DNA of 64,000 nucleotides from Macrostomum lignano (GCA_002269645.1 NIVC01001350.1:1-64000), one strand, 5' to 3'; positions 25,601 through 61,535 are shown, counted from the stretch's first letter. Numbers and translations are program-made. The notes: a model not told the origin generated them from the letters alone.

Positions 25601-28600
25601 CGAGGCGCCGCCGTCCATGAACCACGAGGAGGCCAACGGGATTGAAGACTGCGAGCCTGGACTTGACGAGCAACAGGTGAGTCAAGGACTTCTTATTGTC
25701 GGGCAAAGGACTTATTTTTGTCAAGCCAGTCATGACAGGTCATTGGGAATTTAAATTCAACATCAGCTTAAGAAGCACGGGAATCAGCCAGGCCAAGGTC
25801 ATGGGGAATCGCGGGAATCAGCCAGGCCAAGGTCATGGGGAATCACGGGAATCAGCCAGGCCAAGGTCATGGGGAATCACGGGAATCAGCCAGGCCAAGG
25901 TCATGGGGAATCATAGGAACCAGTCATTCAGGTCATGAGGAATCATTGGAACCAGACAGTCAGGTCATGAGGAATCATAGGAACCAGCCAGTCAGGTCAT
26001 GGGGAATCATTGGAACCAGCCAGTCAGGTCACGGGGAATCATAGGAACCAGACAGTCAGGTCATGGTGTTGATCAGCTTAAGACTCCCCGCCAATCCATG
26101 ACGCCGGCAGGATCTCGGCAGCTTCAGCCACCTGCTGGATGCCGAGTCCCTCGACTTCGATTTGCCGCCGTTCGCCGCGCCGCAGTCGGTCAGCATCCAG
26201 TACGTGCGCGACGTCGCCTCCTCAGTGCTGTTCCGCATGATCCGCTGGGTGCACGACAGGCGCCGGCTGCGAGAGGCCGCCCCGGTCAGCGAGCAGCTCG
26301 GCCACTGCTGGTGCGACGTGTTCGTGCTGTCGCTGTGCCAGTGCTCGCCCCGGATCCCCATGCACGAGCTGCACTCCGCGCTGTCCCGGCACCTGCACGG
26401 CCTCAATGGCGTTGGTGGGTTTTGTAGTGCGACTCTGCGTGTCCGGGATGTGGTGGCTCATTGTCTGATTTGCGACTCTGCGGGTCCGGGATGTGGCTCT
26501 TTGTCTGGTGCACGACTCTGCGGGTCCGGGATGTGGCTCTTTGTCTGGTGCGCGACTCTGCGTGTCTGGGATGTGGCTCTTTGTCTGGTGCGCGACTCTG
26601 CGGGTCCGGGATGTGATGGCTCATTGTCTGATTTGCGACTCTGCGTGTCCGGGATGTGGTGGCTCATTGTCTGATTTGCGACTCTGCGTGTCCGGGATGT
26701 GGTGGCTCATTATCTGATTTGCGACTCTGCGTGTCCGGGATGTGGCTCATTGTCTGATTTGCGACTCTGCGTGTCCGGGATGTGGCTCTTTGTCTGATGT
26801 GCGACTCTGCGTGTCCGGGATGTGGCTCATTGTCTGATGTGCGACTCTGCGTGTCCGGGATTTGGCTCATTGTCTGATGTGCGACTCTGCCCTCTGTTCG
26901 GGGTGCCTGAGTGTGTAGTGTCTGACGTCATGGTGTCTAACGTGTGACTCATAATGTCTGGCTGTGTGACTCATAGTGTCTGGCTGTGTGACTCAATGTC
27001 TGGCTGTGTGACTCATAGTGTCTGGCTGTGTGACTCATAGTGTCTAGCTGTGTGACTCATAGTGTCTGGCTGTGTGACTCATAGTGTCTGAGGCATCAAT
27101 TCAGCGTCAAGCCTTCGCTGACTCTCCAGACGGAGTTCAAGGCAGCGAGTTGGACAGGACCCTAGCCGAGATTGACAAGCTGAAGCACATCATCGGGATG
27201 TTCATCGACGCCAGGGTCACCGGTCTGGAGTACGCCTATCTCAAACTCATCGCTCTGTTTGAGCCGGGTGAGCTCAGCTTAACTTCGTTAGGAGTTTCTG
27301 ACTGCCTGGATTAGTCCGACACAATGGGAGTTGGGATGGGATGACTGGGGGATTCGGGTGGGATGACAGGGAATTCAGATTTGAGGACAGGGGAATTCAG
27401 ATGGGATGACGGGGAATTCAGATTTGAGGACAGGGCAATTCAGATGGGATGACGGGGAATTCAGATTTGAGGACAGGGGAATTCAGATGGGATGACTTGG
27501 AATTCAGATTTGAGGACAGGGGAATTCAGATGGGATGACGGGGAATTCAGATTTGAGGACAGGGGAATTCAGATGGGATGACAGAGGAATTCAGATTTGA
27601 GGACAGGGGAATTCAGATGGGATGACAGAGGAATTCAGGTGGGATGACAGGGGAATTCAGACGGGATGACAGGGGAATTCAGGGGGGATGACAGGAGAAC
27701 TCGGATTTGAAAACGGGGGAATTCGGATGGGAAAGCTACGGCTCTTGCTTGTCCAATTAGCGGTCTGATTTCCAGCGAGTCCTGACCGGAAGCCGCCCCC
27801 CCCCCGCCTTACTGCAGTGTTCTGCGCGCCCACGGAAGACGCCACGCACTCGCTGCTGACGGCCATGCAGGAGCGCGCGGTCAGCGAGCTGCTCAGCCAC
27901 CTGCACGTCTCGCTCGGCGGAGCTCTGCCCGGCCACCAACGGCTGGCCCAGCTGCTGCTCCGCATCAGCTCGATTAGGACTCTGGACAAGGCGCGGATTA
28001 AGGAGATCTTCTTCTCGGGTTGGTCTGCGGGTTTTTCTGCTTGCTTGCCTGAGTTTTGTTACTAGGATGAGTAACCTGGGGACGGGAAGATGAGCTGGAG
28101 TTGTGATTTAGACTCTGATTCCTCATTAGATCAGAACAGCCAGCCCAGGTCATTAAGATAAGATTCACCAGACCATAAAGATAAGATTCACCAAGCCATA
28201 AAGATAAGATTCTTCAGGTCATAAAGATAAGATTCTTCAGGCCATAAAGATAAGATTCTCCAAGGTCATAAAGATAAGATTCTTCAGGTCATAAATATCA
28301 GATTGTCCAGCTCATAAAGATCAGATTCACCAGGTCATAAAGATAATATTCACCAGGTCATAAAGATAAGATTCCCCAGGTCATAAAGATCAGATTGTCC
28401 CGGTCATTAAGATAAGATTCTTCAGGTCATAAAGATAAGATTCTCCAGGTCATAGGGACCAGGTAGCTCAGGTCATTATGATAAGATTATCCAGGTCATA
28501 AATATCAGATTCACCAGGTCATAAAGATAAGATTCCCCAGGTCATAAAGATAAGATTTTCCAGGTCATTATGATAAGATTCTCCAAGGTCATAAAGATAA

Positions 28601-29961: not shown

Positions 29962-30655
29962 CCCCTGACCTTCAGCTGGCGCCACCCCCTGACCTTCAGG
30001 TGGCGCCACCCCCTGATCTTCAGCTGGCGCCACCCCTTGACCTTCAGCTGGCGCCACCCCTCACCTTCATCTGGCGCCACCCCCTGACCTTCAGGTGGCG
30101 CCACTGCCCCCAACCTATAGCTGGCGCCACTCCCCTGACCTTCAGCTGGCGCCACCCTCCCTCACCTTCAGCTGGCGCCACCCACTGACCTTCAGGTGGC
30201 GCCACTGTCCCCAACCCATAGCTGGCGCCACTTTCCTGACCTTCAAGTGGCGCCACTGTCCCCAACCCATAGCTGGCGCCACTTTCCTGACCTTCAAGTG
30301 GCGCCACTGCCCCCAACCTATAGCTGGCGCCACCCCCTGACCTTCAACTGGCGCCACTCCCCTGACCTTCAGCTGGCGCCACCCCCTGAACTTCAGCTGG
30401 CGCCACTCCCCTGACCTTCAGCTGGCGCCACCCCCCCGACCTTCAGCTGGCGCCACCCCCTGACCTTCAGGTGGCGCCACTCCCCTGACCTTCAGCTGGC
30501 GCCACCCCCTGAACTTCAGCTGGTGCCACTCCCCTGACCTTCAGCTGGCGCCACCCCCCCGACCTTCAGCTGGCGCCACCCCCTGACCTTCAGCTGGCGC
30601 CACCCCCCCCCCGACCTTCAGCTGGCGCCGCTCCCCTGACCTTCAGGTGGCGTCA
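29962..30655. repeat. Minisatellite, 24-25-bp unit CCCCCTGACCTTCAGCTGGCGCCA, just downstream of the NR2C stop
   Basis: Tandem repetition with TGACCT, CAGCTG and TGGCGCCA in most units. Confidence 0.95.
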
Positions 30656-31299
30656 CTAAACAAAACAATGTCTAATTTGGTGTCAGTTGAGGTTTTCTAT
30701 TTCGCTTGCCTGTTTGTCATTCAATTGTACCTTTTGTCTCCTATCCGTAACACGTTAAACAATAATTAACAATTTTCCCAGCATATTTTACTGCGTCAAC
30801 GCTTACAATACTACTGCTTCTACTCATCCTAGTAGAGAGCAGGGCATATTCTTGCTGTGCGAAATTTTTGCAAAGATTTCCCCGACCCGTCATATTTTCA
30901 ATAGAATTTCTGTACACCTGTCGCAGCGTTCGATAGACTTTGTACCTGATATCAATAATTGCCACCAGCTAATCTCAGTTATACAGATAGTCTTATCAAA
31001 TTATAATTATCTCGCAGCGTGTCCATAAGCAGCCATTTTGCCCCAACCCCCATATTTAATTGAACCGTCACGTGATTCTTAAAGTCATCCGCTGCACGAA
31101 CTGAAATTCAACTGCCATCCACGCCCACGTGTATACACTGATATATCTGTCTATTTTCTTAAACACTGTTTTTTCGGGTCCATACCGCCTCGCATTTCCC
31201 TGCATAGTGAGCATTGATTAATTCAAGTTGCATCTTGTTATGTTAGAGCTGCTGACGGCTGTCAACACTGTCTCTGCGTCTGATCTCACCCTCTGTCTG

Positions 31300-32056
31300 T
31301 CTCTAATCTCTATAATCTCACTCTCTACTCAGCCTCTAATCTCTCTAATCTCACTCTATCTCAGTCTCTAAATTCTATAATCTCACACTCTATCTCAGTC
31401 TCTAATCTCTCTAATCTCACTCTATCTCAGTCTCTAATCTCTATAATCTCACACTCTATCTCAGTCTCTAATCTCTCTAATCTCACCTCTATCTCAGTCT
31501 CTAATCTCTATAATCTCACACTCTATCTCAGTCTCTAATCTCTCTAATCTCACTCTCTACTCAGCCTCTAATCTCTCTAATCTCACTCTATCTCAGTCTC
31601 TAATCTCTCTAATCTCACCTCTATCTCAATCTAGTCTCTAATCTCTATAATCTCACTCTCTATCTCAGTCTCTAATCTCTCTAATCTCACCTCTATCTCA
31701 GTCTCTAATCTCTCTAATCTCACTCTCTACTCAGCCTCTAATCTCTCTAATCTCACTCTATCTCAGTCTCTAATCTCTCTAATCTCACCTCTATCTCAAT
31801 CTAGTCTCTAATCTCTATAATCTCACTCTCTATCTCAGTCTCTAATCTCTCTAATCTCACCTCTATCTCAATCTAGTCTCTAATCTCTATAATCTCACTC
31901 TCTATCTCAGTCTCTAATCTCTCTAATCTCACCTCTATCTCAGTCTCTAATCTCTATAATCTGACTCTCTACTCAGCCTCTAATCTCTCTAATCTCACTC
32001 TATCTCAGTCTCTAATCTCTCTAATCTCACCTCTATCTCACTCTAGTCTCTAATCT
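31300..32056. repeat. CT-rich degenerate minisatellite (CTCTAATCTCACTCTATCTCAGTCTCTAATCT-like)
   Basis: Tandem repetition. Confidence 0.9.
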
Positions 32057-32504
32057 TACCTTTCGTTTAAGTCTCTACTCTTTAACCTCGCTCCATATCA
32101 TCTCATCCTCTCTCGCATCAACTTCCCAGCTCCCTCCCTCCCAGCGCCAATCACGCGGCCTCCTCGTATTCGAGGTGGCTTGAGTACTTTGCCGTTTGTT
32201 TTATTTGCGCCTAGACGCTGCAGCTCCTTCAGTGTTTTATTGCACCTTTGCCTCTGTGTTCCCAATTATTGCCTGCCTATCACAGCACTTAGCCATATTC
32301 GAATCGAACTGGGAGTTACGGTCAGTGCGTTTCAAAAGGCGAGCTACACACGGGTTAATGTAACCGTTGTATGTCTGTTTTAGTCTTTGTTCATCTATTT
32401 GTTCGTATTTGCAGTCTTCGCTGACAATTAAATCACCGGGAAGTCCTTCGGGTACGAGGCTTGAGCACATGGCGCCTCCTACAGTCATCTCCATACTTCT
32501 CAAA

Positions 32505-34250
32505 ACTAATCTCTCTTCTCAACCCTTATTTGTCTTCTCACTCTTTATCTCTCTTCTCAACCCTTATTTGTCTTCTCACCCCTTATCTCTCTTCTCAACC
32601 CTTATTTGTCTTCTCACCCCTTATCTCTCTTCTCAACCCTTATTTGTCTTCTCACTCTTTATCTCTCTTCTCAACCCTTATTTGTCTTCTCACTCTTTAT
32701 CTCTCTTCTCAACCCTTATTTGTCTTCTCACCCCTTATCTCTCTTCTCAACCCTTATTTGTCTTCTCACTCTTTATCTCTCTTCTCAACCCTTATTTGTC
32801 TTCTCACTCTTTATCTCTCTTCTCAACCCTTATTTGTCTTCTCACCCTTATCTCTCTTCTCAACCATTATTTGTCTTCTCACTCTTTATCTCTCTTCTCA
32901 ACCCTTATTTGTCTTCTCACTCTTTATCTCTCTTCTCAACCCTTATTTGTCTTCTCACCCCTTATCTCTCTTCTCAACCCTTATTTGTCTTCTCACTCTT
33001 TATCTCTCTTCTCAACCCTTATTTGTCTTCTCACTCTTTATCTCTCTTCTCAACCCTTATTTGTCTTCTCACCCCTTATCTCTCTTCTCAACCCTTATTT
33101 GTCTTCTCACTCTTTATCTCTCTTCTCAACCCTTATTTGTCTTCTCACTCTTTATCTCTCTTCTCAACCCTTATTTGTCTTCTCACTCTTTATCTCTCTT
33201 CTCAACCCTTATTTGTCTTCTCACTCTTTATCTCTCTTCTCAACCCTTATTTGTCTTCTCACTCTTTATCTCTCTTCTCAACCCTTATTTGTCTTCTCAC
33301 CCCTTATCTCTCTTCTCAACCCTTATTTGTCTTCTCACTCTTTATCTCTCTTCTCAACCCTTATTTGTCTTCTCACTCTTTATCTCTCTTCTCAACCCTT
33401 ATTTGTCTTCTCACTCTTTATCTCTCTTCTCAACCCTTATTTGTCTTCTCACCCTTTATCTCTCTTCTCAACCCTTATTTGTCTTCTCACTCTTTATCTC
33501 TCTTCTCAACCCTTATTTGTCTTCTCACCCCTTATCTCTCTTCTCAACCCTTATTTGTCTTCTCACTCTTTATCTCTATTCTCAACCCTTATTTGTCTTC
33601 TCACTCTTTATCTCTCTTCTCAACCCTTATTTGTCTTCTCACCCTTTATCTCTCTTCTCAACCCTTATTTGTCTTCTCACTCTTTATCTCTCTTCTCAAC
33701 CCTTATTTGTCTTCTCACCCTTTATCTCTCTTCTCAACCCTTATTTGTCTTCTCACCCCTTATCTCTCATCCCACCCTTATCTGTCTTCTCACCTCTTAT
33801 CTGTCTCCTCACCCCTTATCTCTGTTCTCACCCCTTATCTGTCTTCTCACCCCTTATCTCTCATCCCACCCTTATCTGTCTTCTCACCCCTTATCTCTCA
33901 TCCCACCCTTATCTGTCTTCTCACCTCTTATCTCTCTCCTCACCCCTTATCTCTCTTCTCACCCCTTATCTCTCTCCTCACCCCTTATCTCTCTTCTCAC
34001 CCCTTATCTCTCTCCTCACCCCTTATCTCTCTTCTCACCCCTTATCTCTGTTCTCACCCCTTATCTCTCTTCTCACCCCTTATCTCTCATCCCACCCTTA
34101 TCTGTCTTCTCACCCCTTATCTCTCTCCTCACCCCTTATCTCTCTTCTCACCCCTTATCTCTCTTCTCACCCCTTATCTCTCTCCTCACCCCTTATCTCT
34201 CTTTTCACCCCTTATCTGTCCTCTCACCCCTTATCTATCCTATTCTCACC
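32505..34250. repeat. Minisatellite, 38-bp unit TTCTCAACCCTTATTTGTCTTCTCACTCTTTATCTCTC (two 19-bp halves), decaying to a 19-bp unit at the 3' end
   Basis: Explains the three 560-640 aa Leu/Ser ORFs. Confidence 0.95.
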
Positions 34251-34654
34251 CTTTCTCTCCTTCCTTTCATTCCAGCATGAGTTGCCGCCGTCACTAAAAA
34301 CATTTGAGAATTTTTTCTTACGTCTGAATGACCCACTGTTTTGCTCTGCCTAAAGCGCCATAAACATAACGGTACGAGCGCAAGCCCCCCCCCCCCGCCC
34401 CATCACTCTGGTTCGCTGTGCTTTCTCCGTTTAATAAATTTAGCAAATTAATTTTTAGTATATAGGATGAAACCAAAAAGCTCCATGAATTACATTTGCC
34501 TTCTGCCGAAATGAGAAATTCTTAAACAGTGCAACATAAAACTTCTATTTTGCGAATCAAAGCTCATCAAGCTCATGCCAAGTTTTGCCGGAACTTTGTG
34601 AGTTGGTTATTTTCGTTAAAAATTTTATTTTATTGTTTTATGCCTTGAACTCTA

Positions 34655-36100
34655 TTTTAGACACTCCCAGATCCCCATTTTAGACACTCCCAGATCCCCA
34701 TTTTAGACACTCCCAGATCCTCATTTTAGACACTCCCAGATCCCCATTTTAGACACTCCCAGATCCCCATTTTAGACACTCCCAGATCCCCATTTTAGAC
34801 ACTCCCAGATCCTCATTTTAGACACTCCCAGATCCCCATTTTAGACACTCCCAGATCCCCATTTTAGACACTCCCAGATCCTCATTTTAGACACTCCCAG
34901 ATCCCCATTTTAGACACTCCCAGATCCCCATTTTAGACACTCCCAGATCCCCATTTTAGACACTCCCAGATCCCCATTTTAGACCCCCCAGATCCCCATT
35001 TTAGACACTCCCAGATCCCCATTTTAGACACTCCCAGATCCCCATTTTAGACTCCCAGATCCCCATTTTAGACACTCCCAGATCCCCATTTTAGACACTC
35101 CCAGATCCCCATTTTAGACACTCCCAGATCCCCATTTTAGAAACTCCCAGATCCCCATTTTAGACTCCCAGATCCCCATTTTAGACACTCCCAGATCCCC
35201 ATTTTAGACACTCCCAGATCCCCATTTTAGACACTCCCAGATCCCCATTTTAGACACTCCCAGATCCCCATTTTAGACACTCCCAGATCCCCATTTTAAA
35301 CACTCCCAGATCCCCATTATAGACACTCCCAGATCCCCATTATAGACACTCCCAGATCCCCATTTTAGACACTCCCAGATCCCCATTTTAGACTCCCAGA
35401 TCCCCATTTTAGACACTCCCAGATCCCCATTATAGACACTCCCAGATCCCCATTATAGACACTCCCAGATCCCCATTATAGACACTCCCAGATCCCCATT
35501 TTAGACACTCCCAGATCCCCATTTTAGACACTCCCAGATCCTCATTTTAGACACTCCCAGATCCCCATTTTAGACACTCCCAGATCCCCATTTTAGACAC
35601 TCCCAGATCCCCATTTTAGACACTCCCAGATCCCCATTTTAGACTCCCAGATCCCCATTTTAGACACTCCCAGATCCCCATTTTAGACTCCCAGATCCCC
35701 ATTTTAGACACTCCCAGATCCCCATTATAGACACTCCCAGATCCCCATTATAGACACTCCCAGATCCCCATTATAGACACTCCCAGATCCCCATTTTAGA
35801 CACTCCCAGATCCCCATTTTAGACACTCCCAGATCCCCATTTTAGACACTCCCAGATCCCCATTTTAGACACTCCCAGATCCCCATTTTAGACACTCCCA
35901 GATCCCCATTTTAGACTCCCAGATCCCCATTTTAGACACTCCCAGATCCCCATTTTAGACTCCCAGATCCCCATTTTAGACACTCCCAGATCCCCATTTT
36001 AAACACTCCCAGATCCCCATTATAGACACTCCCAGATCCCCATTATAGACACTCCCAGATCCCCATTTTAGACACTCCCAGATCCCCATTGCCAGCCACA
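34655..36100. repeat. Minisatellite, 23-bp unit TTTTAGACACTCCCAGATCCCCA
   Basis: About 60 near-identical copies ending next to the stop codon of the minus-strand gene. Confidence 0.95.
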
Positions 36101-36114
36101 GATCCCAGATCCGC

Positions 36115-39100
36115 TCAAGATGTGAACATGCATGCAGTGGCGGCCATAGCTGGAGCAAGTACCCAGCAACAGTAATTTATTGTCAGAAAATTCTTCCCAG
36201 AATATCCCATCAGCGATCCGCCATTAGCCGCAACTCGCTGTTGAGTCCAGATGCCGATAGCCTGATCGTAGCGCTTGTCAGAGTAGCCTCCATCGCAGCC
36301 GATCTCAAACCGCCTCAAGGTGTTTCGCAGCCTCACCAGCACTGAGAACAGGCTGCCGGCAGACAGTCCGCACTGCTCAGTCATGGCGTTCTCCAAGCAG
36401 TGACTGGCCCGCCTCCACGCCCCGGCAAGGTGTGCCTCGGTCCAGCTGGCATGGCTGGTGCAGCGGATCTGCCACAGGCTGAAATGGATTCTGCCGGCCC
36501 GGCGTTCTGCAGCTGCGCACTTTGACAGCGCGGCTGAGCGCATGCAGCCGAGGCTGCGTCTGAACGCTGAGGTGGTGGCGGGATTTGCGGCCTGAAGCTG
36601 GGCCTCCCTGTCCTGAATATTTGCCCCCCCCTGTCCTGAAGTTGTATTCTCCCTGTCCTGAATATTTGCTCCCCCTGCCCTGAAGTTGTATTCTCCCTGC
36701 CCTGAGGTTTGGCTCTCCCTGCCCTGAAGCTGTACATGTATTCTCCCTGTCCCTGAGGTTTGGCTCTCCCTGCCCTGAAGTTGTATTCTCCCTGTCCTGA
36801 ATATTTGCCCCCCCCGTCCTGAAGTTTTATTCTCCCTGTCCCTGAGGTTTGGCTCTCCCTGCACTGAAGTTGTATTCTCCCTGTCCTGAGGTTTGGCTCT
36901 CCCTGTCCTGAAGTTTTGCTCACGCTGTCCTGATGGGTTTTGATTTTCCTGTCCTGAGGTTTGTCTCTCCCTGTCCTGAGGTTCGGCCCTCCCTCTCCTG
37001 AGGTTTTTCCCTCCCTGTCCTGAGGTTTGGCTCCCTCTGTCCGGAGGTTCGGCTCTCCCTGTCCTGGGGTTCGGCTCTCCCTGTCCTGAGGTTTGTCTCT
37101 CCCTGTCCTGAGGTTCGGCCCTCCCTCTCCTGAGGTTTGTCCCTCCCTGTCCTGAGGTTTGGCTCTCCCTGTCCTGAGGTTCGGCTCTCCCTGTCCTGAG
37201 GTTCGGCTCTCCCTGTCCTGAGGTTTGTCTCTCCCTGTCCTGAGGTTCGGCCCTCCCTCTCCTGAGGTTTGTCCCTCCCTGTCCTGAGGTTCGGCTCTCC
37301 CTGTCCTGAGGTTCGGCTCTCCCTGTCCTGAGGTTCGGCTCTCCCTGTCCTGAGGTTCGGCTCTCCCTGTCCTGAGGTTTGCACATCTGTATTTGAACAT
37401 TGAACTGCTCTACAAGCATTAAGAATCACACCTGGCACGCGCGAGCAGACAAACTTGAGTTGATGAACTGTCACCTTCCAGTCAAAAGTGGCTCGAATCA
37501 GATCGAACCCGGCGGGGCAGGAATCTCGGACTCGGCGAGCTCCAGCTTCGTAGCTTTGCAGAGCTCTGCGAGGGTAGGTTGGAGGGATTTCCCACCTGCC
37601 AGATGGACTATTCCACTTAAATTTCCCATCCGTCAGCCTGGGAAAACCAGGGATTCTCTCCCGAGGATTTCCCACATTCCAGGTAGGGAATCCCAACAAT
37701 TCTCTCCAGTGGATTTCCCACATTCCAGACTGGGAAACCCAAGGATTCTCTCCAGTGGATTTCTCACATTCCAGGTAGGGAATCCCAAGGATTCTCTCCC
37801 GTCGATTTCCCACACTCCAGGCAGGGAAGCCCAGGGATTCTCTCCCGTGGATTTCCCACATCCCAGGTAGGGAATCCCAAGGATTCTCTCCCGTGGATTT
37901 CCCACATCCCAGTAGGGAATCCCAAGGATTCTCTCCCGTGGATTTCCCACATTCCAGACTGGGAATTCCAAGGATTCTCTCCCGTGGATTTCCCACATTC
38001 GAGGCAGGGAATCCCAGGGATTCCTTATCAGAGATTTCCCACTCGTCCAGTCGCTCACCCACAGATCCCGTCTTTGCCAGTCAGTTTGGTCTCGGCGGCG
38101 GCTGTGAGCACGGGATGCACCGCCTGAATTCCCGAGTCCCGGATAGCGCTCTCAAATTCCATGCGAATTTGCCTGAGCCGCCCCTGAAAGCCGGGCTGGC
38201 AGGCAACCGAGTAGTTGAAGGCTGAGCAGCGAGGGAAAAGAGGGGATTACGTACGCGATATGGGGTGTGCAATATTTGGGAGAAATTTGAGAACTAGCTC
38301 ATCATTTTTACCCAGGACACCTGGCCTTTTGTGCTTAGTCGAAAAGAAACTATTTTTAAAAATGATTTCGAGAAGGACAGACGTAAATTCTTGTGGAGTA
38401 GTTCTCCAGGGAGCCGCTGCTACCCCTTATCCTCTTCTGAGCCGCTGCAATACCCTCTGGTCCTCTTCTTGGCTGCTGCAATACCCTCTGGTCCTCTTCT
38501 TGGCCGCTGCAATACCCTCTGATCCTCTTCTTTGCCGCTGCAATACCCTCTGGTCCTCTTCTTGGCCACTGCAATACCATCTGGTCCTCTTCTTGGCCAC
38601 TGCAATACCCTCTGGTCCTTTTCTTGGCTGCTGCAATACCCTCTGGTCCTCTTCTTGGCCGCTGCAATACACTCTGGTCCTCTTCTTGGCCACTGCAATA
38701 CCCTCTCGTCCTCTTCTATGGCCACTGCAATACCCTCTGGTCCTCTTCTTGGCTGCTGCAATACCCTCTGGTCCTCTTCTTGGCCGCTGCAATACCCTCT
38801 GATCCTCTTCTTTGCCGCTGCAATACCCTCTGGTCCTCTTCTTGGCCACTGCAATACCCTCTGGTCCTCTTCTTGGCCACTGCAATACCCTCTGGTCCTT
38901 TTCTTGGCCGCTGCAATACCCTCTGGTCCTCTTCTTGGCCGCTGCAATTCACTCTGGTCCTCTTCTTGGCCACTGCAATACCCTCTGGTCCTCTTCTATG
39001 GCCACTGCAATACCCTCTGGTCCTCTTCTTGGCAGCTGCAATACCCTCTGGTCGTCTTCTTGGCAGCTGCAATACCCTCTGGTCCTCTTCTTGGCCGCTG

Positions 39101-41265
39101 CAATACACTCTGGTCGTCTTCTTGGCCACTGCAATACCCTCTGGTCCTCTTCTGGGCCGCTGGTCCTGCTCTAGTTGGCTACTCACCATACCGCGGTCTC
39201 TCAAAGCTGTAAGCCTCACGGCATTTGGCCAGCCCCAGCATCCCGACAGCGACAGGTCGGAAACGGTCCTCAGCTCGAGCCCCGTTCGAGCAGCCAGTTC
39301 TCACTAGGGCGGCCAGGCAGCCCAGGTACTCGTTGCTAAGGACGCACTGTCCGGCCCGACGCAGCCGGTTGCGCAGAGAGTACACCTGGCCGCACCGCTG
39401 GGCCAAGTAGCCGCTCAGCTGAGCTGCTATGCAGTGTGCTGAGCCGGCGTAATCTGAATGCCAGGTGAACAAGAGCTGCGACTTTTTAATAATTTCAAAC
39501 TCACAACTATGCATAGCAACTAACCGCGCAAGCCTCTTCTACTTGTATGAGTTACTAAGAGTACTGTTCGAATTTCTAATTTCCCTCATCTCATTGAGCC
39601 GCCTCACCCGGCTGGCAGACGTGTCTGTCATACGCTTCTAATCTGAAGAAGTACTCGCTGCTCTTCTGCTGCCACCAGGTGCACCGGGACCAGCGGCTGC
39701 CTTCACGTTGCAGCACCGAGTCTTGACAAGGGATGTAGGCCTTCAGACTGCTGCGTTATGAGCATTTGGGTGGGAGAAGCTTTCCGTTTGTTTGTGCTTC
39801 AGGGCTTGTGTTTCAGGGTTTGTGTATCCGGGTTTGTGTTTCAGGGTTTGTGTATCCGGGTTTGTGTTTCAGGGTTCGTATTTTGGGGCGGCTGTTTAGA
39901 GGTTTGCTCAACACCTGACACAGCAGCTCAGCTCACACCTGACACAGCAGCTCAGCTCACACCTGACACAGCAGCTCAGCTCACACCTGACACAGCAGCT
40001 CAGCTCACACCTGACACAGCAGCTCAGCTCACACCTGACACAGCAGCTCAGCTCACACCTGACACAGCAGCTCAGCTCACACCTGACACAGCAGCTCAGC
40101 TCACACCTGACACAGCAGCTCAGCTCACACCTGACACAGCAGCTCAGCTCACACCTGACGCAGCAGCTCAGCTCACACCTGACACAGCAGCTCAGCTCAC
40201 ACCTGACACAGCAGCTCAGCTCACACCTGACACAGCAGCTCAGCTCACACCTGACACAGCAGCTCACCTCACACCTGACACAGCAGCTCAGCTCACACCT
40301 GACACAGCAGCTCAGCTCACACTTGACACAGCAGCTCAGCTCACACCTGACACAGCAGCTCAGCTCACACCTGACACAGCAGCTCAGCTCACACCTGACA
40401 CAGCAGCTCAGCTCACACTTGACACAGCAGCTCAGCTCACACCTGACACAGCAGCTCAGCTCACACTTGACACAGCAGCTCAGCTCACACCTGACACAGC
40501 AGCTCAGCTCACACCTGACACAGCAGCAGCTCAGCTCACACCTGACACAGCAGCCCCACCAACCTGCAGAGTTGCGGCTGCAGCTCCGCTGAATGCAAGC
40601 TCAGCTGCATCACTGTTGCCAGGCCGGCAGTCTTGGACTCCTGAGAATACCGGATGAGCTGACTGCGCGGCCCCGGCCCGAGACTGCTCAGGCAGGGGTC
40701 CATCGCCAGGTCGAACCGAAGCTCCGAGCACCAGCGGGTGCCGTTCTCAACTTCATGAGCGGCAGCTGCACATTGCGTAGAAAAATCGGTTTTTTAATTT
40801 CAACAACTAGAGGCAAGATGCTTCTACAACTTTATTTTAGCCAGTATTCACTCTGCTATCTGCGGCAACCCACAGTTCAAAAGCCTGGGGGGGGTCGCCA
40901 CACAGCCTCAATTATCCCAGCTAATGCTGGCATCCATTTTACAGCTGGATGAACTGAAGCATCGCAGAGTTAAGTGTCTTGCTCAAGGACACAAGTTGTT
41001 CCAGTGGGATCGGGAATCGAACCCCCGACCTTCAAGTCGTGAGTCCGACGCTCCATCCACTAGGCTACAACCCCCTCATGAGCACATGTACAAGCGCGCC
41101 AATTTCAAAATTTGATTAGAATATAATTTTAGATTAAAAAAAGACTCAGTTTAACATTTATAGTTCATCCCGTGACCTTAGATGTTACTCACCGATCAGC
41201 ACTGCCGTCGCTACGACTAGAAGCTCCTGAAAGATTCTCTGTCCATCGGACGCTAAGTGCTTCAT
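36115..41265 (-). CDS. Uncharacterised secreted, probably GPI-anchored, Cys-rich protein with two internally duplicated domains, 477 aa
   Basis: Exons 41265-41193, 40765-40564, 39750-39608, 39453-39187, 38221-38059, 37565-37432 and 36566-36115 (1434 nt). All introns are GT-AG, phases 1,2,1,1,2,1 join without a stop. Starts MKHLASDGQRIFQELLVVATAVLIA (signal-like) and ends YCCWVLAPAMAATACMFTS* (hydrophobic tail). Confidence 0.85.
36605..37382. repeat. Intronic minisatellite, 22-bp unit CCCTGTCCTGAGGTTCGGCTCT
   Basis: Last intron of the minus-strand Cys-rich gene. Confidence 0.95.
37640..38040. repeat. Intronic minisatellite, ~46-bp unit GGGAATCCCAAGGATTCTCTCCCGTGGATTTCCCACATTCCAGGTA
   Basis: Intron 5 of the Cys-rich gene. 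Confidence 0.9.
38415..39165. repeat. Intronic minisatellite, 31-bp unit GCCGCTGCAATACCCTCTGGTCCTCTTCTTG
   Basis: Intron 4 of the Cys-rich gene. Confidence 0.95.
39805..39888. repeat. Short 14-bp-unit array GGGTTTGTGTTTCA (same family as 41675-43295)
   Basis: Intron 2 of the Cys-rich gene. Confidence 0.8.
39908..40553. repeat. Intronic minisatellite, 24-bp unit ACACCTGACACAGCAGCTCAGCTC
   Basis: Intron 2 of the Cys-rich gene; the TPDTAAQL ORF is an artefact. Confidence 0.95.
40825..41075 (-). mobile_element. tRNA-derived SINE, near full length, in intron 1 of the Cys-rich gene
   Basis: Reverse complement GGGGGTTGTAGCCTAGTGGATGGAGCG (A box)...GGTTCGATTCC (B box, 41013-41023), then GTGTCCTTGAGCAAGACACTTAAC..CAGTTCATCCAGCTGTAAATGG, a core resembling conserved metazoan SINE central domains; second copy at 1221-1345. 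Confidence 0.8.
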
Positions 41266-41674
41266 TGTTATATGGCGCTGTGGTTTCGAGCTGGTTTGCT
41301 TCTTTTGCTTCTTTAAAAGTTGCTTCAAGATCTGCAAATTCGTCCCGATTGGACCAATCCGGCAGAATTCAATTATCGATGAGGCCTCCATTCAGCTTCC
41401 TCACTCTGCCCTGATAATTACTGCAGACTGGCTGATGAAGCTGCCTGAGCAGCTGATTGAGTACAGAAATTGAGCCCCCCCGATGTTCATCGAATTTTGC
41501 AACCCCCATCATGCTTGCCAGAGTTCTGTGGACCCAATAAAACCGATGTCATATGAAGGACTCTCTTCACAGATAGCGAAAAACGCTATTTGCACTACTC
41601 GTTAAACTACTTATACTGTACTAAACTGGCAACTTGACTGAAACTTGTTGATAGGGGCGTTTTAAGGTGTGAGT

Positions 41675-43295
41675 TTAAGGGTTTGTGTTTAGGGGTTTGT
41701 GTTTTGGGGTTTGTGTTTCAGGGTTTGTGTTTTGGGGTTTGTGTTTAGGGGTTTGTGTTTTGGGGTTTGTGTTTCAGGGTTTGTGTTTTGGGGTTTGTGT
41801 TTTGGGGTTTGTGTTTCAGGGTTTGTGTTTTGGGGTTTGTGTTTTGGGCTTTGTGTTTCAGGGTTTGTGTTTCAGGGTTTGTGTTTCAGGGTTTGTGTTT
41901 TGGGGTTTGTGTTTTGGGATTTGTGTTTTGGGGTTTGTGTTTTGGGGTTTGTGTTTTGGGCTTTGTGTTTTGGGGTTTGTGTTTTGGGCTTTGTGTTTTG
42001 GGGTTTGTGTTTTGAAGTTTGTGTTTTGGGGCTTGTGTTTTGGGGTTTGTGTTTTGGGGTTTGTGTTTTGGGGTTCGTGTTTCAGGGTTTGTGTTTTGGG
42101 GTTTGTGTTTTGGGCTTTGTGTTTTGGGGTTCGTGTTTCAGGGTTTGTGTTTCAGGGTTTGTGTTTTGGGCTTTGTGTTTTGGGGTTTGTGTTTTGAAGT
42201 TTGTGTTTTGGGCTTTGTGTTTTGGGGTTTGTGTTTCAGGGTTTGTGTTTTGGGGTTTGTGTTTTGGGGTTTGTGTTTCAGGGTTTGTGTTTTGGGGTTT
42301 GTGTTTTGGGGTTTGTGTTTTGGGGTTTGTGTTTTGGGGTTTGTGTTCTGGGGTTTGTGTTCTGGGCTTTGTGTTCTGGGCTTTGTGTTTTGGGGCTTGT
42401 GTTTTGGGTTTGTGTTTTGGGGCTTGTGTTTTGGGGTTTGTGTTTTGGGGTTTGTGTTTTGGGGTTTGTGTTTTGGGCTTTGTGTTTTGGGATTTGTGTT
42501 TTGGGGTTTGTGTTTTGGGCTTTGTGTTTTGGGCTTTGTGTTTTGGGGTTTGTGTTTTGAAGTTTGTGTTTTGGGCTTTGTGTTTTGGGGTTTGTGTTTT
42601 GGGGTTTGTGTTTTGGGGCTTGTGTTTTGGGGTTTGTGTTTTGGGGTTTGTGTTTTGGGCTTTGTGTTTTGGGGTTTGTGTTTTGGGGTTTGTGTTTTGG
42701 GGCTTGTGTTTTGGGGTTTTTGTTTTGGGGTTTGTGTTTTGGGGTTTGTGTTTCAGGGTTTGTGTTTTGGGGTTTGTGTTTTGGGGTTTGTGTTTTGGGG
42801 TTTGTGTTTTGGGCTTTGTGTTTTGGGCTTTGTGTTTTGGGGTTTGTGTTTTGGGCTTTGTGTTTTGGGCTTTGTGTTTTGGGGTTTGTGTTTTGAAGTT
42901 TGTGTTTTGGGGCTTGTGTTTTGGGGTTTGTGTTTTGGGGTTTGTGTTTTGGGGTTTGTGTTTCAGGGTTTGTGTTTTGGGGTTTGTGTTTTGGGCTTTG
43001 TGTTTTGGGGTTTGTGTTTTGAAGTTTGTGTTTTGGGGTTTGTGTTTTGGGGTTTGTGTTTTGGGGTTTGTGTTTTGGGCTTTGTGTTTTGGGGTTTGTG
43101 TTTTGGGCTTTGTGTTTTGGGCTTTGCGTTTTGGGGTTTGTGTTTTGAAGTTTGTGTTTTGGGGCTTGTGTTTTGGGGTTTGTGTTTTGGGGTTTGTGTT
43201 TTGGGGTTTGTGTTTTAGGGTTTGTGTTTCAGGGTTTGTGTTTTGGGCTTTGTGTTTTGGGGTTTGTGTTTTGAAGTTTGTGTTTTGGGTTTTGC
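41675..43295. repeat. Minisatellite, 14-bp unit GGGGTTTGTGTTTT, over 100 copies
   Basis: Explains the GFVFWGLCFGVCVL / KPQNTNPKTQTPKH ORFs. Confidence 0.95.
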
Positions 43296-43345
43296 GTTTC
43301 ATTGTAATTAAAGGTTAGCAGTAAAGTGTTTAATTTAAGTGAGTT

Positions 43346-44795
43346 AGGGTGTCAGTTGTCAGCGTGTCAGTTGTCAGGGTGTCAGTTGTCAGGGTGTTAG
43401 TTGTCAGGGTGTCAGTTGTCAGGGTGTCAGTTGTCAGGGTGCCAGTTGTCAGGATGTCAGGGTGTCAGTTGTCAGGATGTCAGGGTGTCAGTTGTTAGGG
43501 TGTCAGTTGTCAGGATGTCAGGGTGTCAGTTGTCAGGGTGTCAGTTGTCAGGGTGTCAGTTGTCAGGGTGTCAGTTGTCAGGGTGCCAGTTGTCAGGATG
43601 TCAGTTATCAGGGTGTCAGTTGTCAGGGTGTCAGTTGTCAGGGTGTCAGGGTGCCAGTTGTCAGGGTGTCAGTTGTCAGGGTGTCAGTTGTCAGGGTGTC
43701 AGTTTTCAGGGTGTCAGTTGTCAGGATGTCAGTTGTCAGGGCGTCAGTTGTCAGGGTGTCAGTTGTCAGGGTGTCAGTTGTCAGGGTGTCAGTTGTCAGG
43801 GTGTCAGTTGTCAGGGTGCCAGTTGTCAGGATGTCAGGGTGTCAGTTGTCAGGATGTCAGGGTGTCAGTTGTTAGGGTGTCAGTTGTCAGGATGTCAGGG
43901 TGTCAGTTGTCAGGGTGTCAGTTGTCAGGGTGTCAGTTGTCAGGGTGCCAGTTGTCAGGATGTCAGTTATCAGGGTGTCAGTTGTCAGGGTGTCAGTTGT
44001 CAGGGTGTCAGGGTGCCAGTTGTCAGGGTGTCAGTTGTCAGGGTGTCAGTTGTCAGGGTGTCAGTTGTCATGGTGCCAGTTGTCAGGGTGTCAGTTGTCA
44101 GGGTGTCAGGGTGTCAGTTGTCAAGGTGTCAGTTGTCAGGATGTCAGGGCGTCAGTTGTCAGGGTGTCAGGGTGTCAGTTGTCAGGATGTCAGTTGTCAG
44201 GGTGCCAGTTGTCAGGATGTCAGTTGTCAGGGCGTCAGTTGTCAGGGTGTCAGTTGTCAGGGTGTCAGTTGTCAGGGTGTCAGGGTGTCAGTTGTCAGGG
44301 TGCCAGTTGTCAGGGTGTCAGTTGTCAGGGTGCCAGTTTTCAGGGTGTCATTTGTCAGGGTGTCAGGGTGTCAGTTGTCAGGGTGCCAGCTGTCAGGGTG
44401 TCAGTTGTCAGGGTGTCAGGGTGTCAGTTGTCATGGTGTCAGTTGTCAGGGTGTCAGTTGTCAGGGTGTCAGGGTGTCAGTTGTCAGGGTGCCAGTTGTC
44501 AGGGTGTCAGTTGTCAGGGTGTCAGGGTGTCAGTTGTCAAGGTGTCAGTTGTCAGGATGTCAGGGCGTCAGTTGTCAGGGTGTCAGGGTGTCAGTTGTCA
44601 GGGTGTTAGTTGTCAGGGTCTCAGTTGTCAGGGTGTCAGGGTGTCAGTTGTCAGGGTGTCAGTTGTCAGGGTGCCAGTTGTCAGGGTGTCAGTTGTCAGG
44701 GTGTCAGGGTGTCAGTTGTCAAGGTGTCAGTTGTCAGGATGTCAGGGCGTCAGTTGTCAGGGTGTCAGTTGTCAGGAGTTGTCAGGGATGTCAGT
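43346..44795. repeat. Minisatellite, 15-bp unit TCAGTTGTCAGGGTG with 7-bp sub-unit slippage
   Basis: Explains the SGCQL / VSVVR ORFs. Confidence 0.95.
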
Positions 44796-45060
44796 TGGCT
44801 TGGAAACCAAACTGTGCGCATTGCCAGCGCCCTCGCAAACCTCTGATGGGGAGGAGTTTTATTAAAAAGCAACTTTGTTCTCATCAGATTCTTCTTCCCA
44901 ATGCAAAAAACGCGGCCAGCTCTTACTGCCCAATTAGTCATGCGAGTCGGAGCTCCAGTTTTGCGGCAGAGGGGAAAAAAAGCACAAAACAGCGCAGCCG
45001 AGGTTGCGCCAAAGGAAGTCGCAGATTTTCTTTCAGCCACCAGAGCGGCACGGAGAGCTC

Positions 45061-45062
<2 letters not shown>

Positions 45063-45142
<80 letters not shown>
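45063..45142. repeat. (CT)n microsatellite
   Basis: About 40 dinucleotide units. Confidence 0.95.
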
Positions 45143-45597
45143 ATCGAACAGACTTTTGCCCTGGCTGTTTGCCTGCCTGTCCTGCACAGGCCGAAATAAT
45201 CCGCCCAAGCAACTCCCATCCCCACATCCGGCTGGGACTGACATCCCCCCCCCCCGGGTAATCAATTCGCCCCCCCCCCTCCCGGCTGCGGATGCTCCGA
45301 GAGCTGCTCAGGGTGACGGAGACCAGACGGAGGGCGAGACTTCTGCCACATTGTGGCGACAGCTACGGGGCTGCCCTTGGAACTTTGACCAGCGGCTTTT
45401 AGTGGTCCTAACAGAAAATCGACTCTGTCAAATTGCAAAACGGATTAAACTAAAGAATGAGAACAGACTTAATTTGAGCTGGGCATTTTCTAGCTCAAAT
45501 ATTTGATTTTATAAAATTAATTATTTTTTTGATGAACCATTTACACAGCTTTACAAATAAAGTTAGTTGGCTCAAACCTTCAAAAGAGAAAAACTAG

Positions 45598-46990
45598 ATA
45601 GTCACACCTGACAACCAAATAGTCACACCTGACAACCAATTAGTCACACCTGACAACCAATTAGTCACACCTGACAACCAAATAGTCACGCCTGACAACC
45701 AAATAGTCACACCTGACAACCAAATAGTCACACCTGACAACCAAATAGTCACACCTGACAACCAAATAGTCACACCTGACAACCAAATAGTCACGCCTGA
45801 CAACCAAATAGTCACACCTGACAACCAAATAGTCACGCCTGACAACCAAATAGTCACACCTGACAACCAAATAGTCACACCTGACAACCAAATAGTCACA
45901 CCTGACAACCAAATAGTCACACCTGACAACCAATTTGTCACACCTGATAATCAAATAGTCACACCTGATAATCAAATAGTCACACCTAACAACCAAATAG
46001 TCACACCTGACAACCAATTAGTCACACCTGATAATCAAATGGTCACACCTGACAGCCAAAGTGGCTCACACCTGACAACCAAATAGTCACACCTGACAAC
46101 CAATTAGTCACACCTGATAATCAAATGGTCACACCTGACAGCCAAAGTGGCTCACACCTGACAACCAAATAGTCACACCTGACAGCCAAAGTGGCTCACA
46201 CCTGACAACCAAATAGTCACACCTGACAACCAATTTGTCACACCTGACAACCAAATAGTCACACCTGACAACCAAATAGTCACACCTGACAACCAAATAG
46301 TCACACCTGACAACCAAATAGTCACACCTGACAACCAAATAGTCACGCCTGACAACCAAATAGTCACACCTGACAACCAAATAGTCACACCTGACAACCA
46401 AATAGTCACACCTGACAACCAATTTGTCACACCTGATAATCAAATGGTCACACCTGACAGCCAAAGTGGCTCACACCTGACAACCAAATAGTCACACCTG
46501 ACAACCAATTTGTCACACCTGACAACCAAATAGTCACACCTGACAACCAATTTGTCACACCTGATAATCAAATAGTCACACCTGATAATCAAATGGTCAC
46601 ACCTGACAGCCAAATTGGCTCACACCTGACAACCAAATAGTCACACCTGATAATCAAACAGTCACACCTGACAACCAATTAGTCACACCTGATAATCAAA
46701 TGGTCACACCTGACAACCAAAGAGTCACACCTGATAATCAAATAGTCACACCTGACAGCCAAATTGGCTCACACCTGACAACCAAATAGTCACACCTGAT
46801 AATCAAACAGTCACACCTGACAACCAATTAGTCACACCTGATAATCAAATGGTCACACCTGACAACCAAAGAGTCACACCTGATAATCAAATAGTCACAC
46901 CTGACAGCCAAATTGGCTCACACCTGACAACCAAATAGTCACACCTGATAATCAAACAGTCACACCTGACAACCAAAGTGGCTCACACCT
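45598..46990. repeat. Minisatellite, 21-bp unit CACACCTGACAACCAAATAGT
   Basis: Over 60 copies with variant blocks. Confidence 0.95.
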
Positions 46991-47539
46991 TGTGACGCCC
47001 AAAGATTGAACCACCTCTACACTAAATCCCGTTATCAGTGTCTGCATCAAAAGCCATAATTTCCGTCCTGTCAGCAGCCTTTTAGACGTCTTTGATGACT
47101 GCCAATCCGGAGACAGACAAAGGTCCTGGGCCAGGCACTCAGGAGGGGCGTGGCCGGGCCGAGCCGATCGAGGGACCCCTTCGTGGGGGCCGTGCGCTGA
47201 GTATTCAGTTAATTAAAAATGCCAGCCAAAGAAAATCTGTCTGTTCGGCCACGGAGGCCTTCTGGACCAATTCAGCAGGGTGATAAAAGTAATTGCTGTG
47301 AGATTTGTGAGGCGAGGCCACAGCCCTGCGAAGCCAATGACGGCGGCTGCGGAAATACAGAGGGTGTGGCTGCACGGGCGATTCAATTCACAAGGCAACA
47401 AACGATCGAACAAAAGAAGTGAGGATAAAGAGCTTTCCATTATTTAACGCAAAAGTCAATAACCTGTTCGTGTCTGCTTTGCAACCCGAGTGGCTGGTGT
47501 CAATATTGAATTTCACTGCTAGGCTGCTGCCTTTCTTGC

Positions 47540-48272
<733 letters not shown>

Positions 48273-60200: not shown

Positions 60201-61535
60201 TGGCGAAGCCAGATGCGATGCCATGCCGAGAAGTTCCAATCGTGGCGCGTTGTCGTTCATGTCTAGAACTCGAAGGTGCACTTGAGCAGTGGCGGATCTA
60301 TTAATTTTGTGTGATGTTGGATAATGATATTTATATCAAAAAGATTATTTAACTTTAACTTCGGTGGTTCTACACTGCAATACCTGACAGGGTCTCCACC
60401 GTCCAATGCTCTGACACTGAAGCCCAACTCCGGGACTGACTCCCGATCGAGGTGCCCAACCAGACGAAGCCAGCCGCTGTCCGCTTCAACAGCCACGAGG
60501 CTTCGCACCATTGGCTGGGTGCCTGGCGCCAGCTGGTAGCGCACTCGACCTGCGGCGCCCGCATCGCAGTCCAGAGCTGACAGGCGCAGCGGCAGCAACG
60601 AGCCAGTTGGTGAGTTCTCGACAATGGATAGCGAATAGGCCGCTCGATCGAATGCCTTTGTGGATGTTTATTTGTATTGTGACTTACATTTTGCGTGTAG
60701 CTGAAGCAGTACATGCTATATATAAAGATACCGATTCACTTACGGGGGCGCAGTCATTCTCATCGATGACACGCACGACGAGATGCAGTCTCGCTTCCAG
60801 CCCACCGCCATCAACTGCCAGCAACGTCAGGCCATCGTAGAAACTTTGCAGCTCCCTGTCCAGCTTACGAGTCAGCGTTAGGAACAGCGACTCCGACTCT
60901 TTCTGTAGCTTGAATGGCGCTCCATTCTCAGCTGCATTCGATATCGGGAGGAGCAGCAGCGAGTGTGAGACTCGACCGAACTCTCCGCAGTCCGGGTCGC
61001 TGGCCTGTGGCAGCGGGCGTCGACTGCCGGGCGGATCGGACTCAATAAACTGCAGCTCGAGGCGGCCCGGCACCGCTGGAAAACTCGGCCGGTTGTCATT
61101 CGCGTCGATGAGTCGCACTCGGACAGTCAGCAGATGAAGTGGCTCCCTAGTGATACAAGAGCTCGCCACCAAGTTCAGGTGCAGAATGCAATGGCTGCAT
61201 TGCTCGCTGGATAGTGAGCAGACTGCCTCGCGGTCGAGACTCTTCTTGAGAATCAGCCTCTGAGAGTTAATTGAATTATCTACTTCAAATGCGTCATCAA
61301 TACCGCCAGCTCCAAAGCTGGGCAGCAGTTCGTACTCTGAGCTTGGCGGCAGCTGCGGCAATTCGCCCAGCACCAGAGGTGCGTCAGACCCTTCAGATAC
61401 CGTGAATAAGTTTGCAGCAGCACCTGGGCCGCTTCCGGGGCTCGTGGACAGGACATCCACAACAGTTGCGGCCCCGCTCTCTTTGCTCAACTGCAGCAGC
61501 AGAGGTGCCCAGAGCAATATCAACCAGAGAGGCAT
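57241..61535 (-). CDS. Protocadherin-like protein with 7 extracellular cadherin repeats, one transmembrane segment and a short visible tail
   Basis: Exons 61535-60744, 60655-60384, 60297-59580, 58858-58404 and 57748-57241 (or donor at 57288 joined to a last exon 57139-57081). Signal peptide MPLWLILLWAPLLLQL; DRE, DxNDxxP and AxDxD motifs; Cys insert DREAVCSLSSEQCSHC in EC1; TM WAAVGLIACATSLLAATVALVLL. Confidence 0.88.
58010..58314. repeat. Intronic minisatellite, 22-bp unit CAGTGACAGTCCTTCAAGAATA
   Basis: Protocadherin intron 57749-58403. Confidence 0.95.

Follow-up and report, generated by a model that had tools for sequence, protein, structure and literature searches.

A candidate seven-exon gene for a duplicated, cysteine-rich and probably lipid-anchored protein of an unnamed spiralian family

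Results and discussion

Seven minus-strand exons form a single reading frame

The present analysis concerns a 64,000-nucleotide stretch of DNA (NIVC01001350.1:1-64000 of assembly GCA_002269645.1, Macrostomum lignano), here called the window, and within it a series of short GC-rich islands that very likely encode a cysteine-rich protein of two related domains. We read the span 35500-42000 and translated these islands on the minus strand. Seven exons splice to a coding sequence (CDS) of 1434 nt, corresponding to 477 codons and a TGA stop (41265-36115; Table 1). Each exon island holds an open frame, an AG acceptor and a GT donor flank all exon borders, and all twelve splice-site dinucleotides are canonical (GT-AG). 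The introns follow each other in phases 1,2,1,1,2,1, the GC content of the exons is 52-64%, and that of the three codon positions of the CDS 0.59/0.53/0.69 (GC3 0.69). The acceptor of exon 3 is a CAGCAG (NAGNAG) tandem (39745-39752), and a possible in-frame alternative acceptor 3 nt downstream would delete one Ser.

At the other end of the gene, a 23-bp minisatellite begins 25 nt past the stop codon and probably represents the 3' untranslated region (UTR) or 3' flank; the 3' UTR may thus be almost wholly minisatellite. On the gene strand, AATAAA first occurs ~1480 nt past the stop, just beyond this array, which leaves the 3' end undefined. One further AATAAA is located inside the CDS, ~60 nt ahead of the stop.

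Homologues in flatworms, nemerteans and annelids

An exhaustive phmmer search of 1.84 billion representative proteins, with the 477-amino-acid protein as query, returned seven proteins. The best match was a 493-amino-acid M. lignano protein (PAA58018.1; E 1.2e-86, 40% identity, residues 39-428), which has been deposited as hypothetical from three gene copies (BOX15_Mlig027548 g1-g3; PAA58018.1, PAA61619.1, PAA48494.1) and carries the UniProt name 'Secreted protein'. Lower-scoring matches came from the nemertean Lineus longissimus (XP_064635286.1, E 1.3e-15), the leech Helobdella robusta (XP_009029340.1, E 7e-6) and a 481-amino-acid protein, P0007, from a Logan contig (E 1e-4). The CDS of P0007 is uninterrupted on its 1872-bp contig, which is most probably the spliced transcript of a family member. 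The other matches were fragmentary or fused M. lignano models; the UniProt models P0003, P0004, P0011 and P0012 of this species, for instance, contain frameshifts or run on into unrelated genes (with kinase, PIPK and AAA_lid in their names; 799-1896 amino acids), probably through errors of assembly or annotation in a polyploid genome. The annotation of the Helobdella protein, in turn, is truncated to domain 2, with the exons of half 1 found by tblastn upstream of the called gene (KB097639.1, L004 1147-8012). A word-indexed protein search found nothing with the single protein and, with alignment A1, Helobdella only.

Exact spliced mapping onto the genomic loci showed that the Mlig027548 gene likewise has seven exons, with introns in phases 1,2,1,1,2,1 at matching protein positions, while in Lineus the gene is split into nine exons, with phases 1,2,1,2,1,2,1,2. 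The phase-1 intron after the signal segment is kept in both. Individual exons tell the same story: the counterparts of exons 2 (by tblastn) and 4 in the M. lignano homologue are 44% and 50% identical, respectively, that of exon 6 measures 134 nt in both the M. lignano homologue and Lineus, and exon 5 carries the most conserved motif of the family, AF.Y...C.P.F. With a homologous gene of seven exons in the same phases, we could exclude a chance concatenation of open reading frames (ORFs), ruled out by an orthologue at E 1e-86 of identical exon structure. A hidden seven-exon gene with one 477-amino-acid frame had been the central claim of the original prediction, made from the DNA alone, and it stands at the same coordinates, with its GT-AG borders and a homologue whose exons match.

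Full-length similarity, two ~200-amino-acid domains with 8-9 invariant Cys columns, and the positions and phases of the introns place the gene in one family with Mlig027548. Beyond their seven exons and phases, the two genes agree in the framework of Cys residues, in a putative signal peptide, in a C-terminal tail of hydrophobic character and in introns packed with minisatellites; Mlig027548 differs in its longer Gln/Ser/Arg-rich stalk before the tail and its 17-kb first intron. Lineus, Helobdella and P0007 have in common with the window gene the two-domain layout, the invariant Cys columns and three shared intron positions per half, yet they are only 18-23% identical to it and keep in domain 2 a Cys pair that is lost in flatworms (see below); Lineus, and apparently Helobdella, have one extra phase-2 intron per half. 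The family is spiralian-wide, unnamed and without a Pfam model. In this respect, the prediction of a gene of no named family was right as far as named relatives go, but the family is not fully hidden: its uncharacterised members are already deposited as hypothetical proteins. A tblastn search found no paralogue of the gene elsewhere in the window, and no microsynteny was seen between the window gene and the Mlig027548 locus within +-10 kb. We found no mention of Mlig027548 in the literature or in supplements of three M. lignano papers, nor of SRR21676472 in the literature.

The two halves arose by internal duplication

Since plain BLASTP between half 1 and half 2 was weak (E 0.03), we built profiles of the two halves, from four species for half 1 and five for half 2, and compared them with hhalign. 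In global mode, the halves aligned over 172 columns and scored 38.7 (P 3e-7); in local mode, they scored 42.3. By comparison, 100 column shuffles of half 2 gave 3.5+-2.3 (max 9.4) globally and 12.8+-2.1 (max 19.2) locally, and the reversed profile 6.6 and 14.8, respectively. An unsupervised MAFFT alignment of nine half-domains (A2) revealed eight Cys columns that are invariant across all nine and a ninth that is present in seven of them. The internal duplication of the halves is real. This bears out the proposal that the halves align in sequence as well as in intron position and that an exon-block duplication gave rise to two Cys-rich domains; the junction peptides and phases cited in its favour (QLC/SSLKAYIPC, HVCQP/DYAGSAHC and their counterparts in domain 2) were exact for all three pairs.

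The cysteines further distinguish the halves. In A2, those at columns 22 and 77 are absent together, and only in half 2 of flatworms, and this joint loss suggests that they are bonded to one another as a disulfide. One other Cys is placed differently in each half, at column 184 in half 1 and at column 148 in half 2. Domain 1 contains 12 Cys and domain 2 contains 10. From this distribution (the joint loss at columns 22/77 and the shifted columns 184/148), we infer an ancestral domain with 12 Cys in six pairs, of which one pair would have been lost together from domain 2 in flatworms.

Intron positions suggest an old duplication of a four-exon module

By exact spliced mapping of three genes (the window gene, its M. 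lignano homologue and Lineus), introns could be placed on A2. A phase-1 intron marks the start of both modules; a phase-2 intron at column 69 and a phase-1 intron at column 125 (124 in one half) occur in 6/6 mapped halves; and a further phase-2 intron at column 185 is found in both Lineus halves only. When the leech-like transcript was aligned to the Helobdella locus by tblastn, the matches broke off at corresponding intron sites, the extra one in both halves included, and Helobdella apparently has the extra phase-2 intron in each half, too.

The matching place of the extra phase-2 intron in each half of Lineus, and apparently of the leech, argues that the duplicated module probably comprised four exons ancestrally (phases 1-2-1-2), that flatworms probably lost the last intron of each block, two introns in all, which left 3+3 exons, and that the tandem duplication probably predates the split of flatworms, nemerteans and annelids, this being the most economical account. 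As an alternative, nemerteans and annelids might have gained the introns in parallel. The predicted duplication of a three-exon module should therefore be revised: the exon-block duplication itself stands, whereas the ancestral module probably had four exons as judged from the Lineus and leech introns. Nor was the duplication an event of this lineage, since it is common to a nemertean and an annelid.

Putative signals for secretion and lipid anchoring at the protein termini

From the chosen start, the protein reads MKHLASDGQRIFQE, then LLVVATAVLIAAA, then HE, a layout of n-region, h-region and A-x-A in which the hydrophobic core LLVVATAVLIAAA precedes AAA-HE (most hydrophobic 10-mer LLVVATAVLI, Kyte-Doolittle hydropathy (KD) 3.14). 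N-terminal hydrophobic segments are present in the window gene, the M. lignano homologue, Lineus and P0007, but not in the truncated Helobdella model. The C-terminus, GGSLMGYSGKNFLTINY-CCWVLAPAMAATACMFTS, runs from small residues over a spacer to a hydrophobic tail at the very end of the protein; terminal hydrophobic tails occur in 5/5 sequences (window gene, M. lignano, Lineus, P0007, Helobdella), and some homologues have Ser/Thr/Gln-rich stalks. A signal peptide together with small residues, a spacer and a terminal hydrophobic tail is the classical layout of glycosylphosphatidylinositol (GPI)-anchored precursors. The protein is thus probably secreted and held at the cell surface by a lipid (GPI) anchor.

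Two points weigh against this assignment. The hydrophobicity of the C-terminal tail is modest (KD 1.75 over 12 amino acids), and the start codon is ambiguous, with an in-frame ATG 42 codons upstream (~41391; 41266-41391, minus strand) that is preceded immediately by an in-frame stop; because of this second ATG, we set the start by homology. Translation from the upstream ATG would place the hydrophobic segment inside the protein, where it would serve as a signal anchor. An integral membrane protein, be it through such a type II anchor or through a C-terminal transmembrane helix, might also find some support in P0007, whose hydrophobic segment lies at residues 42-51, and in structural models by AlphaFold2 (AF2), which render the termini as helices. 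Yet these terminal helices are of low confidence (predicted local distance difference test, pLDDT, < 50), the hydrophobic segment of the M. lignano homologue and Lineus starts at residues 5-9 and gives way to small residues, and the C-terminal hydrophobic stretch of all homologues reaches to within 1-5 residues of the end, with neither a basic stop-transfer cluster nor a cytoplasmic domain. Hence, we regard an integral membrane protein as unlikely. Of the predicted signal-like N-terminus and hydrophobic GPI-type tail, both signals are kept in homologues, but the modest tail and the upstream ATG qualify the claim.

Predicted fold and strength of the gene model

Both domains are predicted to be all-alpha. 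AF2 returned all-helical models for the full-length protein (six-sequence alignment; pLDDT 69.5, predicted TM score (pTM) 0.64; termini pLDDT < 50) and for domain 2 (nine-row alignment; eight helices, pLDDT 77.6, pTM 0.74). Helical domains had been anticipated from the Cys spacing, which was said to recall the DUF19/T20D4.11-like domains, secreted and Cys-rich, of nematodes. The helical part of this proposal agrees with the models, and weak matches to other secreted, Cys-rich helical families (CPG4, DUF725, DUF1397; one each for the latter two) could be taken in its favour. The likeness to DUF19 nonetheless ends there: PF01579 gave no match to the whole protein (E<=10), five homologues (E<=1) or the nine half-domains (E<=10), which makes true DUF19 membership improbable. 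Membership in any other named family was rejected as well, all Pfam scores being below the gathering cutoff.

Several observations count against a gene of the architecture described here. There is no RNA evidence for this genome, and the product is absent from the protein collection covered by the word-indexed search (query, the 477-amino-acid protein). No canonical poly(A) signal is found within 1.4 kb of the stop. Besides, the alignments behind the AF2 models are shallow (6 and 9 sequences). In a Foldseek search of the PDB, neither model had a match at E<0.2, and TM scores stayed < 0.3, to generic helical bundles and membrane proteins; no Pfam family reached its gathering score with the whole protein, the homologues or the nine half-domains. 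The AlphaFold and Foldseek check suggested at the outset hence came out as all-helical domains with no solved relative in the PDB.

The lack of transcript evidence and of a nearby poly(A) signal, along with introns and a 3' flank overrun by minisatellites, would also fit a decaying or unexpressed pseudogene copy whose frame is intact by chance. We consider this very improbable, because the frame across seven open exons, all twelve canonical splice dinucleotides and every Cys that is invariant in the family are intact; in addition, the protein is 40% identical to its M. lignano homologue over the whole length without a frameshift. The introns of the functional-looking orthologue at the Mlig027548 locus are equally filled, with 17-45-bp minisatellites and TAGA-type microsatellites, and the repeats are therefore a habit of the genome rather than a sign of decay. 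Together with the 40% identity of the best match and the identical intron set, these filled introns suggest a macrostomid-like flatworm as the source of the window. All in all, we put the probability that the seven islands are a real animal protein-coding gene with the described two-domain architecture at about 0.8.

Remote relatives and possible functions

In the sequence of events that we propose, a phase-1-to-phase-1 exon block doubled in tandem and gave rise to the two homologous domains. The 477-amino-acid precursor would comprise a signal peptide, two all-alpha domains of ~200 amino acids, a short stalk and a hydrophobic tail without cytoplasmic extension. It would be translocated into the endoplasmic reticulum via its N-terminal signal peptide, be oxidised to form disulfides (six for domain 1, five for domain 2), be transferred to a GPI anchor, and be displayed on the outer cell surface. 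There, it might tentatively be thought of as a binding protein or co-receptor for an extracellular ligand, in analogy to the RGM N-domain, neuritin, GFR-alpha and GAS1, which are GPI-anchored, disulfide-stapled helical ectodomains. GFR-alpha and GAS1 share the general design predicted here, with tandem helical disulfide-rich domains on a GPI anchor. On the negative side, this role has no direct support, with no characterised family member, Pfam match above cutoff or PDB neighbour; no GFR-alpha, GFRAL, GAS1 or RGM chain was among the Foldseek matches listed (best 50), and the GDNF domain (PF02351) had no Pfam match in the whole protein, the homologues or the half-domains.

Below the cutoffs, certain profiles hint at a possible remote kinship to small disulfide-stapled helical domains (CPG4, RGM_N, neuritin). 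RGM_N (PF06535) scored 7.6-17 bits against a cutoff of 24.2, with a matching register in three independent sequences, and NRN1/neuritin (PF15056) 14-17 bits (at most 16.7) against a cutoff of 27 in two homologues only. Among PDB sequence profiles, A1 retrieved nothing and A2 only RGMA (4UHY_C) at E 0.35, a weak alignment in which four Cys line up within the motif C-x2-L-x2-Y-x2-C-x7-C. Several independent half-domains show this motif in a matching register. RGM (N-domain, PDB 4UHY chain C) and neuritin are GPI-anchored proteins whose small helical domains are likewise stapled by disulfides. These domains differ, however, in length (~70-90 amino acids versus ~200), and the window gene lacks RGM_C/vWD: there was no RGM_C match, and GDPH does not occur in the 477-amino-acid sequence. 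We found nothing relevant in the literature that links DUF19, CPG4 and neuritin, or RGM and neuritin.

CPG4 (PF15481) was the best sub-threshold Pfam match. Its domains are secreted and Cys-rich, and nearly the whole model (positions 9-90 of 94) aligns with the N-terminal half of Lineus domain 1 (21 bits, E 5e-4). This could favour the main functional rival of a co-receptor, namely that the same gene and architecture yield a secreted product with a matrix or structural role (for instance, the core of a proteoglycan or a protein like those of eggshell or cuticle; cf. C. elegans CPG-4) rather than a GPI-anchored binder; the Ser/Thr/Gln-rich stretches ahead of the C-terminus in Helobdella and the M. 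lignano homologue would be in keeping with it. But the CPG4 match falls short of the 32.7-bit cutoff and extends to only 2/9 half-domains (the second at E 0.06), with none in the window gene's own halves, and all full-length homologues possess a hydrophobic GPI-like tail, for which a purely secreted matrix protein would have no need. We thus hold a matrix role to be rather less likely than the already tentative role as a co-receptor.

More speculatively, each 200-amino-acid domain may itself be composed of two six-Cys units, each built around a helix-turn-helix staple of the form C-x8-C-x7/8-C. The protein would then be an array of four units, to which a two-exon (phase 1-2) unit, perhaps a distant relative of the RGM-N/neuritin/CPG4 domains, grew by doubling twice in succession. 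In favour of such an array are the 6+6 Cys per half, with one motif in both sub-domains; the extra intron of Lineus, and apparently of the leech, which interrupts the codon that immediately follows the motif's first Cys, in phase 2, exactly as does the column-69 intron; the perfectly periodic Lineus phases; and the consistent register of the sub-threshold RGM_N, NRN1 and CPG4 matches. Against it, the hhalign comparison of N- and C-terminal sub-domains was not significant (12.5 versus 8.7+-1.5 for shuffles, max 13.0), and we consider the four-unit array doubtful. If the kinship to these small domains held, the family would be a spiralian arm of an ancient superfamily of bilaterian GPI-anchored co-receptors for morphogens or growth factors, and could bear on the evolution of such co-receptors. 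Otherwise, it would be one more lineage-restricted secreted Cys-rich protein, which would not be surprising.

Either way, the gene defines a conserved, unnamed spiralian family that spans at least flatworms, nemerteans and annelids, with no Pfam model and no similar solved structure, and it offers an unusually clean case of a domain that doubled when a phase-symmetric exon block was duplicated in tandem. The positions of the shared introns probably date this duplication to before the phyla split and point to parallel intron loss in flatworms. New here are the statistical proof of the duplication, its probable antiquity, the putative ancestral module of four exons and its loss of introns in flatworms, the joint disappearance of a Cys pair, and the failure of the DUF19 assignment. 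Transgenesis and RNA interference are established in M. lignano and Mlig027548 therefore provides a direct route to function. The family may also be of use for annotation, given that truncation or fusion affects the model of Helobdella and several of those of M. lignano.

Repeats and neighbouring genes

The five minisatellites and the SINE (short interspersed element) that had been predicted between the exons were recovered with Tandem Repeats Finder and by an Rfam tRNA match, respectively. The minisatellites lie within introns 2, 4, 5 and 6, with units of 14/28, 24, 31, 46 and 22 bp. The head of the SINE in intron 1, on the minus strand, matches the Rfam tRNA model with 28.4 bits (E 5.8e-4). 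A second, partial copy, 78% identical over 119 bp and in the opposite orientation, is situated at 1233-1341. The body of the SINE carries the motif TGTCCTTGAGCAAGACACTTAAC. About 12 kb of near-continuous mini- and microsatellite arrays enclose the gene (30000-36090 and 41679-48000; units of 4, 14, 15, 21, 23, 25, 33 and 38 bp), and the orthologous M. lignano locus is similarly rich in such arrays.

Table 1. Features of the gene model and of the remaining window (whole-window positions; lengths in nt)
Feature	Position	Strand	Description
Exon 1	41193..41265	-	73 nt; ATG and signal-peptide-like N-terminus MKHLASDGQRIFQELLVVATAVLI; donor GTGAGT; followed by phase-1 intron
Intron 1	40766..41192	-	427 nt; tRNA-derived SINE ~40850-41080, tRNA-like head 41005-41074
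Exon 2	40564..40765	-	202 nt, phase 1 to 2; first exon of domain 1; ends ...QPQLC, next codon split
Intron 2	39751..40563	-	813 nt; 24-bp minisatellite 39906-40554 (27 copies) and 14/28-bp minisatellite 39790-39876
Exon 3	39608..39750	-	143 nt, phase 2 to 1; SSLKAYIPC...HVCQP
Exon 4	39187..39453	-	267 nt, phase 1 to 1; DYAGSAHC...CLAALVRTGC...ERPRY; closes domain 1
Intron 4	38222..39186	-	965 nt; 31-bp minisatellite 38430-39162 (24 copies); border between the duplicated modules
Exon 5	38059..38221	-	163 nt, phase 1 to 2; AFNYSVAC...KDGIC; first exon of domain 2
Intron 5	37566..38058	-	493 nt; 46-bp minisatellite 37640-38023
Exon 6	37432..37565	-	134 nt, phase 2 to 1; GALQSYEAG...FVCSRVP
Intron 6	36567..37431	-	865 nt; 22-bp minisatellite 36604-37381 (35 copies)
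Exon 7	36115..36566	-	452 nt including TGA; rest of domain 2 (to ~36268), short stalk, GPI-signal-like tail 36118-36213 ...GGSLMGYSGKNFLTINYCCWVLAPAMAATACMFTS
23-bp minisatellite	34654..36090		63 copies
ALDH1L-type (10-formyltetrahydrofolate dehydrogenase-type) exons	2933-6456	+	Pfam Formyl_trans_C, PP-binding, Aldedh; broken up by short-period repeats
tRNA-Ala(CGC) gene	23985-24056	-	1 kb upstream of the nuclear-receptor exon
Nuclear-receptor DNA-binding-domain exon	25050-25754	+	zf-C4, E 7.5e-28; followed by poly-Gln and poly-Asn tracts
Intronless rhodopsin-family G protein-coupled receptor (GPCR) ORF	49722-51392	+	556 amino acids; long third intracellular loop
Cadherin-repeat exons	57241-61586	-	Pfam (58.3-61.6 kb); protocadherin-like N-terminus and signal peptide ~61586
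FH2 formin exon	62365-63996	-	Pfam; large, runs off the window end

Elsewhere in the window, which is animal DNA, we observed exons or genes of several familiar kinds, the coding ones confirmed by Pfam (Table 1). The GPCR ORF had no record in the gene-position collection, and the FH2 exon matched remote vertebrate and plant formins only.

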